From Oikopleura dioica (Eukaryota > Animalia > Chordata), in NCBI GenBank assembly GCA_907165135.1, contig OU015567.1, positions 8,308,001 to 8,372,000 on the forward strand: 64,000 bases of DNA, given 5' to 3'. Each line of letters starts with the position of its first letter. Within the stretch, counting starts at the first letter, position 1. A program made the translations under genes and the position numbers. Below are positions 16,901 through 22,609 of this stretch, piece after piece. Below the pieces are notes generated by a model, which made no database searches, was not told the origin of the DNA, and saw nothing but the letters and a program-made list of their open reading frames with translations.

Positions 16901-18328
16901 TTTAGCGAAGTAGAGAGCGAAATACAGCAACTGATGAAGGGAGATTACCCGACTTTTATGATCAAGGAAATCAAGGAACAGCCAGAAACGATCGTCAATG
17001 TCTCAAGAGGAAGGGTGAATTACGAAGAGTCGAGTGTGGCTCTTGGAGGACTGAGCAAACATATTGGAGAAATTAAAAGATCCAGGTGAGTCTTCCTTGA
17101 TTTCATTAAACTCATCAGCGCCAAGGCGAATCGTGATTCTTGGATGTGGAACATCTAATCATGCTGCCATTGCTGCCAGACAGCTGATCGAGGAAATGTC
17201 TGATTTACCAGTGACAGTCGATGTCGCTTCGGACTTCGTGGACCGCTCGGGAGCCATTTACAGAGACGATGTTGTCATTTTCGTTTCTCAAAGTGGAGAA
17301 ACTGCTGACACTCTTTCTGCGCTCAATTATGCTAAAAAAGAGAGGATGCCTTCTTGTTGGTGTGACGAATACTGTCGGATCCACCATCTCCAGGTCAGAA
17401 ACAGAGGTGAATACAGAGCTTTAACAGTCATTCAGGGAGACAGATTGTGGAATTCACTGCAACGCTGGACAAGAAATTGGCGTCGCCTCGACAAAAACAT
17501 TTTCCGCCCAGTTCACAGTTCTGGTTCTTTTCGCTCTTCTTCTCAGTGAAGGGAGATTTTCAAAGCGAAAGCGATACACGGAAATTCTGCAGAACTTGAA
17601 AAAGCTCCCAGGTTCAAACAACAAGTCTCTTTTTTTCTGACTGTATTCAGCTCAAATACAGGAGACACTTGCTCTTGAAGAACAATGCAAAGAAATCGCA
17701 AAGCTTTGGAAGGATAAAACATCCGTTTTGATGATGGCTAGGGGCTACAACTTTGCGAATGTGCTTGAAGGAGCTTTGGTAATCCTTACAGTAATTAAAT
17801 TTGATTAATCTTTTTCAGAAATTGAAAGAAGTCGCAAATCTGTTCGCAGAAGGAATTTTGACCGGAGAACTAAAGCACGGACCGTTGGCTCTCGTCGAAC
17901 ACGATCTTCCAATGCTGATGATCGTCTGCGACGACAACACTTTTTGACAAGTGTATGAATGCTGTTCAGCAAGTCACAGCCAGAGGGGTAAGTCTTCGTC
18001 AAAATCTGTAGGAAAATAATTCGTGATAAAGGGAAAACCGGTTATCATCTGCGATCGACATCTAAAACCTAAGCTTGAGAAGTTCTCTGATCATCTTTTG
18101 CTCCTTCCGGAAACGACTGATTGCTTGAAAGGTTTTGAAAATTATATCTTCAACTACCAATCGTGTTTATTTCAGGTCTTTTGAGCGTGGTACCACTGCA
18201 ACTTCTCGCTTACCATGTAGCCACTCTTCGGGGACATAATGTAAGATTTACTTTTGAAGCTTTTGTTGATGAAAAATTTAAAGGTTGACTTTCCCAGAGC
18301 CTTGGCAAAATCGCTCGCTGTCGAATAA
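13943..18328 (+). CDS. GFAT: Glutamine:fructose-6-phosphate amidotransferase (GFAT/GFPT), multi-exon
   Basis: Motifs in order: [10 protein letters not shown] (N-terminal nucleophile Cys), [102 protein letters not shown], and C-terminal [14 protein letters not shown]. Confidence 0.95.
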
Positions 18329-18857: not shown

Positions 18858-19182
18858 TTTCTCGCAAACTCAGGGTTAGGGCCTCCTCTGTAGGACACGG
18901 TAGCCTGGCTACCAAGAACGGTGTGAACTTTGCCATATGATGTAGGTGATTGTAGAGTCTACATTGTAGATAGATCTGTCAAACAAATCTATTGATCAAA
19001 AGTTTTGATTTTCATACCAGCAAAGTTTTCAGCAGCAAAATTTTCAATGAACAACAGAGAACTTATTCTTATTTGGCGAAGTTCAAAATGAAAAACAGTA
19101 TCCACTTTGCTCTTCAAATAATTTTCCTGGAAAAGATTTGAAATTAACTTGAGCGTAACTTCATCATAAATACACAACAATA

Positions 19183-20724
19183 TTGAAACCTTTGAAAAAG
19201 ATAACCGCTGGAATTTGCTTTCTATTAACATTTGGAAATGTCATCGTATTTAATTTTTCATCCTCAAATTCTAAATACCCACCAATTGAAAAAGTAACTC
19301 GAAAGAACATTTATATTTCTGCGTCTTTTCGATCTGGTTCCTCTTTTCTTGGGTCTATATTTGACCAAAATCCTGATTTTCTTTATGAATGGCTTTTCAT
19401 CTCATTACTTGCAATAAGTTGCAAATGACTAAAAAAACTTTTTAACTGTTTCATGAAAATCGATAGATAAAGCCAAAGTACTTTGAGCCCCTTACAGGAA
19501 GTCTCACTGAAAGACTAGAAATTTTAGAAGAAGCATTCAGTTGTAAACTCCCTAAGAATCGCAGAGATAATCCTCAAGATCGTCATCAACTGTCTCATAC
19601 AATCGGGCATTGGTATGGATCAGCGTGGGTCAGCAAGTCATCTTCAGTTAGGTTAGGGTTTGATCAGAAGTTATTGTTCAATAAGACTGCTGACCCCTAT
19701 GAATCAGTGACACTTTGTAGCCCGCCATTTTGTCCGCAATCAAAAATGTGGTGCAAGAAATGTAAGGATCCTTTCAAAACTCCAGAAGGAGAAGAAAAAC
19801 TGATCGAATTTTGCAAAGAGAAAAAGGGCGTTGCAATCAAAGAATTTCGTCTCGATGGCCCAGAAGATCTCTACCACTTGCTAGAGCCAGAGATGAACTT
19901 GAAAATCATTCGTCTGGTTAGAGACCCGAGAAGCATGTTTTTATCACGAAGAAAATTGGGCAAAGAATACCACAATGGGCAGACGGTTGAAAAGATTACA
20001 GTAAATACCGCTGGTCTGGGACGGTCCTAATTCACGAAAGCGTCCCAAAACAGCAGGATTTTCGCATTCGACTCTCGGGCGCCACTTTCGCTTTCGGGGT
20101 AAAGCGGTCAGTTTAAAAACACCCGCCGTAGGCGATTGCCTTTGATCCTTATTTCGCCCGACCGTCCCAAACTAGCAGGATTTTTGAGCGTCCCAAACCA
20201 GCGGTATTTACTGTACTGATGATTGCGAAAAAACATTGAGTTTCTTTGTTGATTCCGAGATTGAAAAGCAGCTCATATTTATTCGTTACGAAGATATATC
20301 CAGATTTCCGACTGAATTGACAATTGATATTTATGAAAGGCTTCAAATCGAGATGAAAGATGATTTCCTTGAGAAGTTTTATCAAGCTACTCATTCAGGA
20401 AAGGACCAAGAGTATCTGAACTTGAATTTTAGACCGTAATTAATTATGGGTATTTGAGCTTCAATGTTGGATTCTTTACAAGAGAAGAGAAGTTCTTTTA
20501 GTATCAATAAAGGCAAAACTGATGATGAACTTTTTGACGAATGGAAAAAGGGGCTAGAAGATGGAAAATTCAGTACTTCAGAGATTCAAACAATCGAAAA
20601 AAGATGCAAAGCCATGATGAAATTATTTGGATACAGAACAAATGTGTTGATGAAGCCGAACGTCACGTCGGTAGAAAAGAATTGGCGTCCGATTGATCCA
20701 AAGATTCTAGCTCCACCAATTTAG
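19183..20724 (+). CDS. Golgi carbohydrate sulfotransferase (CHST, GlcNAc/Gal-6-O type), type II membrane protein; one exon interrupted by a MITE; true start not resolved
   Basis: N-terminal TM segment ITAGICFLLTFGNVIVF; 5'-PSB motif SASFRSGSSFLGSIFDQNP; 3'-PB motif LKIIRLVRDPRSMFLSR; IRYED; C-terminal CKAMMKLFGY. Confidence 0.85.
19999..20213. mobile_element. Tc1/mariner-type MITE (215 bp) inserted in the sulfotransferase exon
   Basis: TIRs cagtaaataccgctggtctgggacg / cgtcccaaaccagcggtatttactg (25 bp, 1 mismatch). TA duplicated at 19997-19998 and 20214-20215. Confidence 0.92.
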
Positions 20725-20784
20725 TTAATTATTTCTTTATTTTCGAAGTATTTTTTTGTTAATAAAATTGTCAGAAGTTGTGAT

Positions 20785-21213
20785 CAGGGTTCGGTATTTT
20801 GAATTCGCGAAATTATTCGTTTTTCATTTGAATTTCTATTTATTCGTTTACGAATATTCTCTATTGAGCGAATATGCAAAACGAATAAAAACGAATTTTC
20901 TCGGAGAATTTTTCAGAAATTCAGCGAATTTCTCAAATATTCGCTCTGCCGCGTGCTCTGATTGGTCGGGCTTTCACGTTGCGCAGCCTATGATTTTATC
21001 TTCACCGCCTAAATAACCTAATAGCTCACGGGCGCCACCCTTTTCTCACCCGCGGCCCTGGAGTTTAGCCAATCCAGGGCCTGGACGCTCAATTTAGAGC
21101 GAATATTCGCGCGAATATGCAATTCGCTAACATTCGCTCATTCGCTTAGAAAAAGAGCATATTCGTCAAGTGTAATGGCGAATTTCTCGACGAATTCAAA
21201 ATACCGAACCCTG
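20785..21213. mobile_element. hAT-type MITE (429 bp)
   Basis: Perfect 23-bp TIR cagggttcggtattttgaattcg. 8-bp TSD gttgtgat at 20777-20784 and 21214-21221. Many subterminal GCGAAT/ATTCGC motifs. Confidence 0.93.
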
Positions 21214-22609
21214 GTTGTGATATCACTTTGATGTTTCTAAGCAAATAAGCAACACTTTACGGATATCGTAATATTGATCATTCGAGGAGCTAAAACTATC
21301 AGCAAAGAGAGGCGTCGCTATTTTGCAAATATTCGCCTGAGCATAATCCGCGAATTTTCGCGAAATTCACACATCACTGAGCGCGTGATAAGGAATGCAG
21401 CCTGATAACAGCGGAATTCCCTCTCCAAAATTTTTGATTCCGCTTCAAAATTACAAATCTCGCTCATTTCTTGACAAATTAAGGGAGCGTCTCATCAGCA
21501 ATCAGGTTTCTCCGCCATAATTTGTTTTATTTGGCGCCAAATAAAGCCTTTATTGAATACTCAATGTTCGTTAATGATTTCACAACATGCTTGGTGACAT
21601 CTTACATGGTGCAAATTTGAACATGCCGAGCACAGCAGACCTTTCTGTTAGATTCAATTGCTTCAATAATATTGAAAACAATTGTTTCATTAGAAGAACA
21701 TGATTCCATTAGGAATGTCCTCGACTCAAAAAGGCGAGTTCTCCAGTTCTGATTTTTGACTCAGAAAGGGAGAAATTTGAGAGAAAAAGAAGCATTTTCA
21801 GACAGCGAAAAACAGAAACGAGGGTCTCAAAGCAAGGGTCGGTAAAAAGAGGATGAGAGGAGCATCTAAACAATGCGTCGCCCCTGACAGGCGGTTAGTA
21901 GATGAACACAAGCACGGAGACGTACGGTAGAACCAACAACGCCAACAAAAAACCAGCAGATGTCATCGATAATTCCAGCTCCGTCACTCAAGTCCGTTCA
22001 AGAAGCTATTTCAAAATCGCCTCCAAGATACGAAGAAAGGATGCTTTTTACGATTCTAGATGGCTCGTTACAGTTGTTTATTTCGTAAAACAGTAGTGAT
22101 CTGAAGCCTCCCCGCTGGCCACGTGCCGACTTTAGCATAAATCTGGTGATTTTCTAGAACAAGCGACAAAGTTTTTGGGTTTACGCGCTTCGGCCACTCA
22201 CTTGAGAGCATGAACCAGGCAACGGGTGACAATTTTTTCGTGAATTTTTTTATCTCAATTTTGACACTTTAATCACTTTTTCGCGCGAATTTCAACACTT
22301 CCAGCACAGCCGACAAGGTGAGCAAGGATACTTACGAAGTATTCTTAATTTTAAGCCGCTTGAGCTTTTGAAAAAATACAATTTAGGGGGAAAACATGGC
22401 AAAACCGATTTTCTTGTTATCCCCTCCCTTGCAGTTAACATAGTAAGCCCCTTATTCATGCATATAGGCGAATAATTAAGAACTTCAAAAGAAGAAAATC
22501 ATTTTTTTACGACGTCAAACTACTAAAAGTTCGTAAAAATAAACAAAATATCTAGAATAGTACTCGTAATAGTAAGTTTTTCACTAGTAGTTTACTCTTC
22601 GAGACTACA

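Follow-up and report, generated by a model that had tools for sequence, protein, structure and literature searches.

Introduction

Transposons that generate introns, known as introners, have reportedly been recognised in Micromonas and others, in work by Huff in 2016 and by Gozashti in 2022 and 2025, the tunicate Styela clava included. They carry a splice site that, with the help of the target duplication, allows them to be removed precisely, and they are present in hundreds to thousands of genic copies. It is also said that exonic Tc1 insertions are removed from the mRNA of C. elegans, as Rushforth and Anderson described in 1996. Here, a Tc1-like miniature inverted-repeat transposable element (MITE) that interrupts a sulfotransferase gene of Oikopleura dioica was compared with these systems. 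The element lies at positions 19999 to 20213 of a 64,000-nucleotide stretch (assembly GCA_907165135.1, contig OU015567.1, positions 8,308,001 to 8,372,000 of the forward strand), called the window below, to which all positions refer unless a contig is named. The analysis covered this 64-kb window and one merged-haplotype reference assembly (19 contigs, 64,281,565 bp searched).

The MITE shares with introners that it is a short non-autonomous DNA transposon in coding sequence, in a marine eukaryote with rampant intron gain. Unlike them, its family numbers about 28 copies, of which a single one is clearly exonic, and the exact stretch of element and duplication (217 nt) is not removed by any GT-AG or G[ACG]-AG pair. 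With exonic Tc1 in C. elegans it has in common the Tc1 type, the pairing repeats, the position in a coding exon and the premature stop, and homologues of the factors that act on Tc1 there are encoded in O. dioica. It differs in its shorter stem and its tunicate host, and it is described here at the level of DNA. Those factors belong to SOS splicing, which requires AKAP17A, CAAP1 and the ligase RTCB and is efficient yet imprecise, only some of the products being in frame (PMC12779559). The MITE-derived introns of Fritillaria borealis (PMC11282704 and PMC13326754, summarising Henriet et al. 2019) resemble the present case in the larvacean host, the TAC followed by AG...AC, the repeats and the duplication. 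In contrast, the U2AF paralogues behind AG-AC splicing are specific to F. borealis, and AG-AC is here only a sequence likeness.

Among Tc1/mariner MITEs (Stowaway-like or Tc1-like non-autonomous elements), the element is typical in its TA duplication, CAGT...ACTG termini, inverted repeats with an inner copy, size of about 200 bp, lack of an open frame and dispersal through the genome in several subfamilies. It is unusual in that the assembly holds no autonomous partner and only about 28 copies. The interrupted gene shares with CHST1-like (Gal/GlcNAc-6-O) carbohydrate sulfotransferases the RSGSS and RDPR motifs and a type II membrane anchor; unlike the others, its family is a lineage-specific Oikopleura expansion, and this copy has an extra 84 nt.

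Effect of the insertion on the host gene

As judged from the reading frames and from the relatives of the gene, it is rather probable that the MITE is a disruptive insertion, which would represent a null or strongly hypomorphic allele, probably unfixed, in a redundant gene family. The element has inserted at a TA in the main exon of one CHST1-like paralogue, shifting the frame and bringing an early stop. The upstream reading frame (plus strand) ends 30 nt into the MITE at a TAA at positions 20028 to 20030, which is the stop that the initial annotation had indicated, and the downstream frame is offset by +1 (217 = 3 x 72 + 1). When the MITE and one TA (217 nt) are taken out, the frame is restored, again as first described, and reads ...TVEKIT/DDCEKTLSFF... 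(the slash marks the junction), with the same length as ...VDKVF/DDCEKTLDFF... in the paralogues. This restored frame is collinear with three uninterrupted paralogues and with an ortholog-like protein of 88% identity.

In the DNA alignment, the site was found to be empty, with unchanged length across it, in all three paralogues. The ortholog-like protein P0010 (ENA assembly) shares 88% identity with the host gene and 78% with paralogue 1, and it reads TVEKVIDDCEKT straight across the site. Since the site is empty in the paralogues and in P0010, the empty state is ancestral. The insertion breaks the Sulfotransfer_1 domain roughly in the middle, and ~37% of the protein, at the C-terminus, is lost by the truncation. 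The predicted truncated product would be without half of the domain, because the MITE falls close to position 125-130 in a profile of 255.

Apart from the MITE, the host gene is open throughout. The view that both halves are otherwise intact holds once the start is placed at the ATG at 19088, followed by a 71-nt GA-AG intron. The proposal of a recent knock-out lesion stood at the DNA level: the insertion is disruptive and looks recent, but with 5 private differences in 215 bp it is not necessarily brand new. The assembly was made from one male and its haplotypes, with a heterozygosity of about 3.6%, were merged with HaploMerger2; because of this merging, any insertion in the assembly may be carried by just one chromosome of the pair. 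The allele, a presumptive null or strong hypomorph, is probably not fixed and would be tolerated through diploidy and close paralogues, in an assembly that merges two very divergent haplotypes.

Anatomy of the element and its family

The element is a 215-bp, non-autonomous MITE of the Tc1/mariner superfamily without coding capacity, bounded by CAGT...ACTG termini and flanked by TA target-site duplications at 19997-19998 (left copy) and 20214-20215 (right copy). Its left terminal inverted repeat arm (19999-20033) has its partner in the right arm (20179-20213); element, arms and duplications were recorded without strand. The terminal repeats of 25 nt differ by 1 mismatch, and none of the shuffled windows yielded two matches. 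Including the TA, the inverted arms reach 37 nt and are 86% complementary. A direct-repeat and inverted-pair search located an inner second copy of the repeat core at 20160-20184, and such an inner copy adjoins each end. The open frames within the MITE are spurious read-throughs only. The size, repeats, duplication and Tc1-like nature given in the initial annotation are all in agreement with these features and with the dispersed family described below.

At least 33 related matches were obtained in the whole-genome search, and five copies were at least 95% identical. Further subfamilies of 213, 201 and 192 bp were recognised, four subfamilies altogether, across which the termini are conserved. 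TA was present on both sides of every copy that could be scored for its flanks. A pattern search for the repeat ends gave 55 ends, corresponding to about 28 elements, which is a very low copy number. Compared with the consensus of the young subfamily, which is identical to copy L002, the element has 5 private differences in 215 bp, all of them internal. The element is a low-copy Tc1/mariner-superfamily MITE. It is young; it need not be brand new, because of the 5 private substitutions.

No autonomous partner with these repeats was found in the assembly, and no ends were spaced widely enough to enclose a transposase gene. All 55 ends were either solitary or paired within ~220 bp, and for this reason no autonomous copy carries them. 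The genome profile search gave no match above the cut-off for the DDE_3 transposase and none for the mariner Transposase_1, the control search for the latter likewise matching nowhere. The pogo-like DDE_1 domain was detected at 7 places, with no MITE repeat ends near any of them.

In order to see whether the family behaves as introners do, the open frames spanning its copies were evaluated. The copy in the host gene was the only one of 20 full-length copies that splits a long open frame. The other 19 had a median spanning open frame of 42 nt, versus 62 nt at random TA sites (Mann-Whitney p = 0.004; baseline drawn from the 64-kb window only). None of these 19 was spanned by an open frame of 120 nt or more, versus 14% of the random sites; the frame at the host site is 221 nt. 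The short open frames around the other copies are a signature of selection against exonic copies. Since 19 copies avoid long open frames, this selection is indicated rather than neutral, intron-like insertion. The family is not introner-like. A genome-wide count of the terminal repeats at exon junctions had been put forward as a check on the intron idea; the ~28 elements and the single copy in a long frame did not bear it out.

Identity and structure of the host gene

More distant homologues of the host gene carry the name carbohydrate sulfotransferase 1-like. Taken singly, as separate pieces and not as a joined model, its exons scored at most 11.9 bits in Pfam, none of them significantly. Because of this, the family was assigned via the paralogues and relatives: with a cut-off of 22 bits for Sulfotransfer_1 (PF00685), the related protein P0001 scored 35.3 bits and the open frame of paralogue 3 scored 37.5 bits, and the host gene is 53-88% identical to the relatives that pass. 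The motif RSGSSFLG lies in the exon at 19201-19386, and IIRLVRDPRSM lies upstream of the MITE in the main exon. We take these to be the 5' and the 3' binding motifs, respectively, for 3'-phosphoadenosine-5'-phosphosulfate. By these similarities the host gene would be a CHST1-like carbohydrate sulfotransferase, one of at least four O. dioica paralogues, and the earlier description of the interrupted exon as sulfotransferase coding sequence is borne out by the scores and the motifs.

The locus is autosomal, on chromosome 2. The family has at least four loci in the genome, with 53-78% identity, and at least three close paralogues, 66-78% identical to the host gene, are on the pseudoautosomal region (PAR). 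Paralogue 3 has a gene model, Oidioi.mRNA.OKI2018_I69.PAR.g9366 (P0005), which matches the open frame at locus L034 over 209 residues with 100% identity. An annotated OKI2018_I69 gene model for the host locus was not among the protein matches within the searched length ranges. Two sulfotransferase paralogues stand in tandem on the PAR (C1:2774067-2776777, L032/L033). In a protein search that used one of them as the query, neither had a gene model among the matches of 150-476 aa.

The exon and intron limits of the host gene were deduced from collinearity with the relatives, and all features lie on the plus strand. The first coding exon, MKNSIHFALQIIFL, at 19088-19129, lines up with the N-terminal sequence of the ortholog-like P0013 (...ALQVIFL/ITAT...). 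It is followed at 19130-19200 by a 71-nt GA-AG intron (GAAAAG...AAAAAG), which holds an in-frame TGA and is absent from P0013. Since P0013 is without it, this first intron appears to be a presence/absence difference between Oikopleura lineages. A loss of the start codon (ATG to ATA at 19180) was considered and ruled out, P0013 placing the start at the ATG at 19088, before the 71-nt intron. The next exon (19201-19386) begins ITAGICF... and carries the membrane anchor besides RSGSSFLG. The paralogue alignment places after it a 92-nt GA-AG intron at 19387-19478 (TAT/GAATGG...CCAAAG/TAC). At the donor position 19387, two paralogues have GA and the third has GC. The exon join DFLY/YFEPLTGS is present in P0001 (340 aa, from a 1075-nt contig), and this contig is best read as the spliced transcript of a relative.

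The main exon consists of the part 5' of the MITE (19479-19998, from the open frame and the paralogue alignment) and the part 3' of it (20216-20409, DDCEKTLSFF...THSGKDQ), whose 3' limit comes from collinearity with P0001. In the simplest placement, a probable GA-AG intron occupies 20410-20484. The last coding exon (20485-20724) reads KRSSFSINKGK...APPI and then stops, its 5' limit being likewise deduced. All three introns of this reconstruction would start with GA and end with AG, and they would be non-canonical. Published data report that 11-12% of O. dioica introns are non-canonical and that these are enriched among new introns (PMC8008620; PMC4122922). In the same species, 76% of the introns are at new positions, the reported non-canonical class is GA-AG (PMC4122922), and the median intron is 49 nt (PMC8008620). 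The GA-AG borders of all the host introns agree with this non-canonical share.

The main exon contains an extra in-frame 84 nt at 19624-19707 (equivalent to 19619-19702), flanked by a 5-nt ATCAG repeat. This segment occurs nowhere else in the genome; neither the three paralogues nor any homologue has it, their sequence being GSETLCS. It may add 28 residues to the protein or conceal an intron, either GT-AG of 57 nt or GC-AG of 63 nt. In the empty allele, GTT/GAAAAG...TTGAAAAG/CAG (19989-19998 joined to 20216-20268) would bound a 63-nt in-frame GA-AG segment. The hexamer at this donor is the one present at the first intron of the host gene. As all relatives have the segment as coding sequence, it may represent an exitron-like site.

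Candidate splice sites in and around the MITE

The initial annotation had also presented the MITE as an intron gain in progress, with two in-frame GT-AG pairs ready for use. Splice pairs were scanned with donors at 19900-20030 and acceptors at 20100-20330, keeping those in frame and free of stops. Splice-site strength was judged qualitatively; an ab initio matrix from paired open frames was abandoned, its 293 and then 28 candidates yielding no motif. Within ~100 nt of the MITE ends, the scan returned 19 GT-AG pairs and 69 G[ACG]-AG pairs. With the sites confined to the MITE interior, exactly two GT-AG pairs remained, 20024/20201 and 20014/20188. These are indeed in frame and stop-free, as had been noted. 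Nevertheless, at least one such pair appeared in 52% of the trials with mononucleotide-shuffled MITEs, and at least two in 30%; in-frame GT-AG pairs in the MITE are no commoner than chance. Their donors (ACG/GTCCTA and CTG/GTCTGG) are weak and lack the signal normally seen at +3 to +6; no pyrimidine tract is present in the acceptor CCCAAACCAG. The sole strong donor in the repeat is ACA/GTAAAT at 20001, and each acceptor in frame with it either retains a stop or costs 14-18 residues of the conserved DDCEKTLSFFVDSE segment.

In the predicted RNA fold, the terminal repeats pair as a stem (minimum free energy -85.4 kcal/mol, z = -4.0), and none of 200 shuffles folded as well. Such a stem would bury all four sites of both GT-AG pairs. 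The scan contained no GT-AG or G[ACG]-AG pair that removes exactly the element and its duplication (217 nt, 19997-20216); exact removal is possible only as AG...AC, at 20000-20216. Two offset in-frame pairs of 217 nt, 20024/20240 (GT-AG) and 19985/20201 (GG-AG), would change the protein. The MITE cannot be regarded as an established intron, nor does anything in its sequence particularly predispose it to that role. The idea of a ready-made intron found no support in the sequence, given the chance-level pairs, the weak donors, the sites in the predicted stem and the family that does not behave as introners do.

Alternative explanations

Several points weigh against a disruptive allele. The 5 private substitutions in 215 bp mean that the insertion need not be brand new, and an otherwise open gene is also what a tolerated, RNA-repaired allele would be expected to look like. 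Moreover, O. dioica has ~12% non-canonical introns (PMC4122922), every intron deduced for the host gene is GA-AG, 69 in-frame G[ACG]-AG options surround the MITE, and the factors of SOS splicing are encoded in the genome. An alternative that the initial annotation had not raised, and one that is rather unlikely, is that the insertion is removed from the transcript by SOS splicing, in which AKAP17A-CAAP1-RTCB would recognise the repeat hairpin in the pre-mRNA and excise it imprecisely near the repeat ends, independently of the spliceosome. A fraction of the products would then be in frame and the allele would keep partial function. Every tested exonic insertion of Tc1, Tc3 and Tc4 in C. elegans was excised, as were reporters with Tc1 or HSMAR2 in human cells (Zhao et al., Nature 2025, PMC12779559). 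Repeat pairing was necessary and sufficient, Tc1 with the transposase deleted being still excised, and the endogenous targets include inverted repeats from non-autonomous transposons (PMC12779559). The MITE lies in a coding exon between conserved residues, its repeats form the stem described above in silico, and transcription of the host gene is assumed. All three factors were detected in the genome, each above its Pfam cut-off: the RNA-binding domain of AKAP17A (PF25015, 129.8 bits, C5:10771373-10772059, chromosome 2), CAAP1 (PF15335, 41.1 bits, C1:15195633-15195818, PAR) and RTCB (PF01139, 360.8 bits, C2:4189849-4191311). On the other hand, the stem of the MITE has only ~19 + 7 bp with a mismatch, compared with repeats of 54 nt in Tc1. 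The excision is imprecise, with 98% out-of-frame products in one published case, and the residues right after the insertion site (DDCEKTL) are conserved. The depletion of family copies from open frames indicates that any rescue is at best partial. The evidence on this pathway comes from other animals, the tunicate case being by analogy, and no literature link between SOS splicing and tunicates or intron gain was found. If the transcripts are repaired, SOS splicing would, by this analogy, be no worse a candidate than removal by the spliceosome. Likewise, SOS splicing or cryptic G[ACG]-AG splicing would be more likely than the GT-AG pairs 20024/20201 and 20014/20188. The retention of the three homologues in O. 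dioica, a species with heavy gene loss, was observed in addition.

The other explanations are harder to accept. That the MITE is a nascent spliceosomal intron, giving an in-frame mRNA with a small indel through the cryptic pairs 20024/20201 or 20014/20188 or through G[ACG]-AG sites, is improbable. It has in its favour that both GT-AG pairs keep the frame without a stop, that the O. dioica spliceosome is permissive (~12% non-canonical introns, 76% at new positions; PMC4122922), that the deduced host introns are all GA-AG, and that the donor GTT/GAAAAG at 19989 repeats the hexamer of the first-intron donor. Against it stand the frequency of such pairs in shuffles (30-52%), the poor donors and acceptor, the location of all four sites within the predicted stem, and the best donor, GTAAAT at 20001, which yields only stops or the 14-18-residue deletion. 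The 19989/20268 option removes 21 conserved residues, introns of 178-280 nt would be long next to the median of 49 nt in this genome, and the family shows no introner-like behaviour. It is very improbable that the original mRNA is restored exactly by AG-AC removal of 20000-20216 (217 nt), in the manner of F. borealis. The site does read TAC/AG...GTAC/TG, because the target was TA and then C, and F. borealis introns are mostly AG-AC or AG-AT, follow an exonic TAC, carry terminal repeats with target duplications and are considered to be MITE-derived (PMC11282704). However, AG-AC splicing is tied there to lineage-specific duplicates of U2AF1 and U2AF2 (PMC13326754), and GA-AG is the kind of non-canonical intron reported in O. 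dioica (PMC4122922). Finally, an assembly or polishing artefact, with no real insertion, can hardly be believed. In its favour, the assembly was built from Nanopore data with merged haplotypes, and an error estimate of 1.3% has been reported for it. Against it, the TA duplication is perfect, the repeats are intact, the element is a full-length copy from a dispersed family and the frame arithmetic is exact, none of which an artefact would produce. A disruptive insertion in a redundant gene is the explanation that we prefer.

Neighbouring features

A same-strand gene at 17064-18300, upstream of the sulfotransferase, presumably encodes, to judge from a sequence motif, a protein resembling glutamine-fructose-6-phosphate aminotransferase. 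Less than 1 kb separates its end from the start of the sulfotransferase gene. A second young MITE of 429 bp was located at 20785-21213, 60 nt past the sulfotransferase stop. It was classified as hAT-type because of its perfect 23-nt terminal repeats (CAGGGTTCGG...) and its perfect 8-bp duplication GTTGTGAT at 20777-20784 and 21214-21221. Two fresh insertions are therefore present within 1.2 kb of one gene.

Implications for intron gain in O. dioica

Taken singly, this transposon-insertion allele of a redundant gene is ordinary; its value is only that of a test case. Most ancestral introns of O. dioica have been replaced, 76% are at new positions and many are GA-AG. A datable exonic MITE with a known empty site allows its fate in the mRNA to be asked directly: it could be retained, spliced by the spliceosome or excised by SOS splicing. 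The answer would be more informative across all exonic MITEs of the genome than at this locus. As a tentative and somewhat doubtful proposal, the MITE may be removed from the sulfotransferase mRNA by SOS-type excision or by a permissive spliceosome, exonic MITEs being tolerated in this way until they mature into new, often non-canonical introns. If this proposal holds, intron birth would be on view in a chordate, and SOS splicing would be linked to intron gain.

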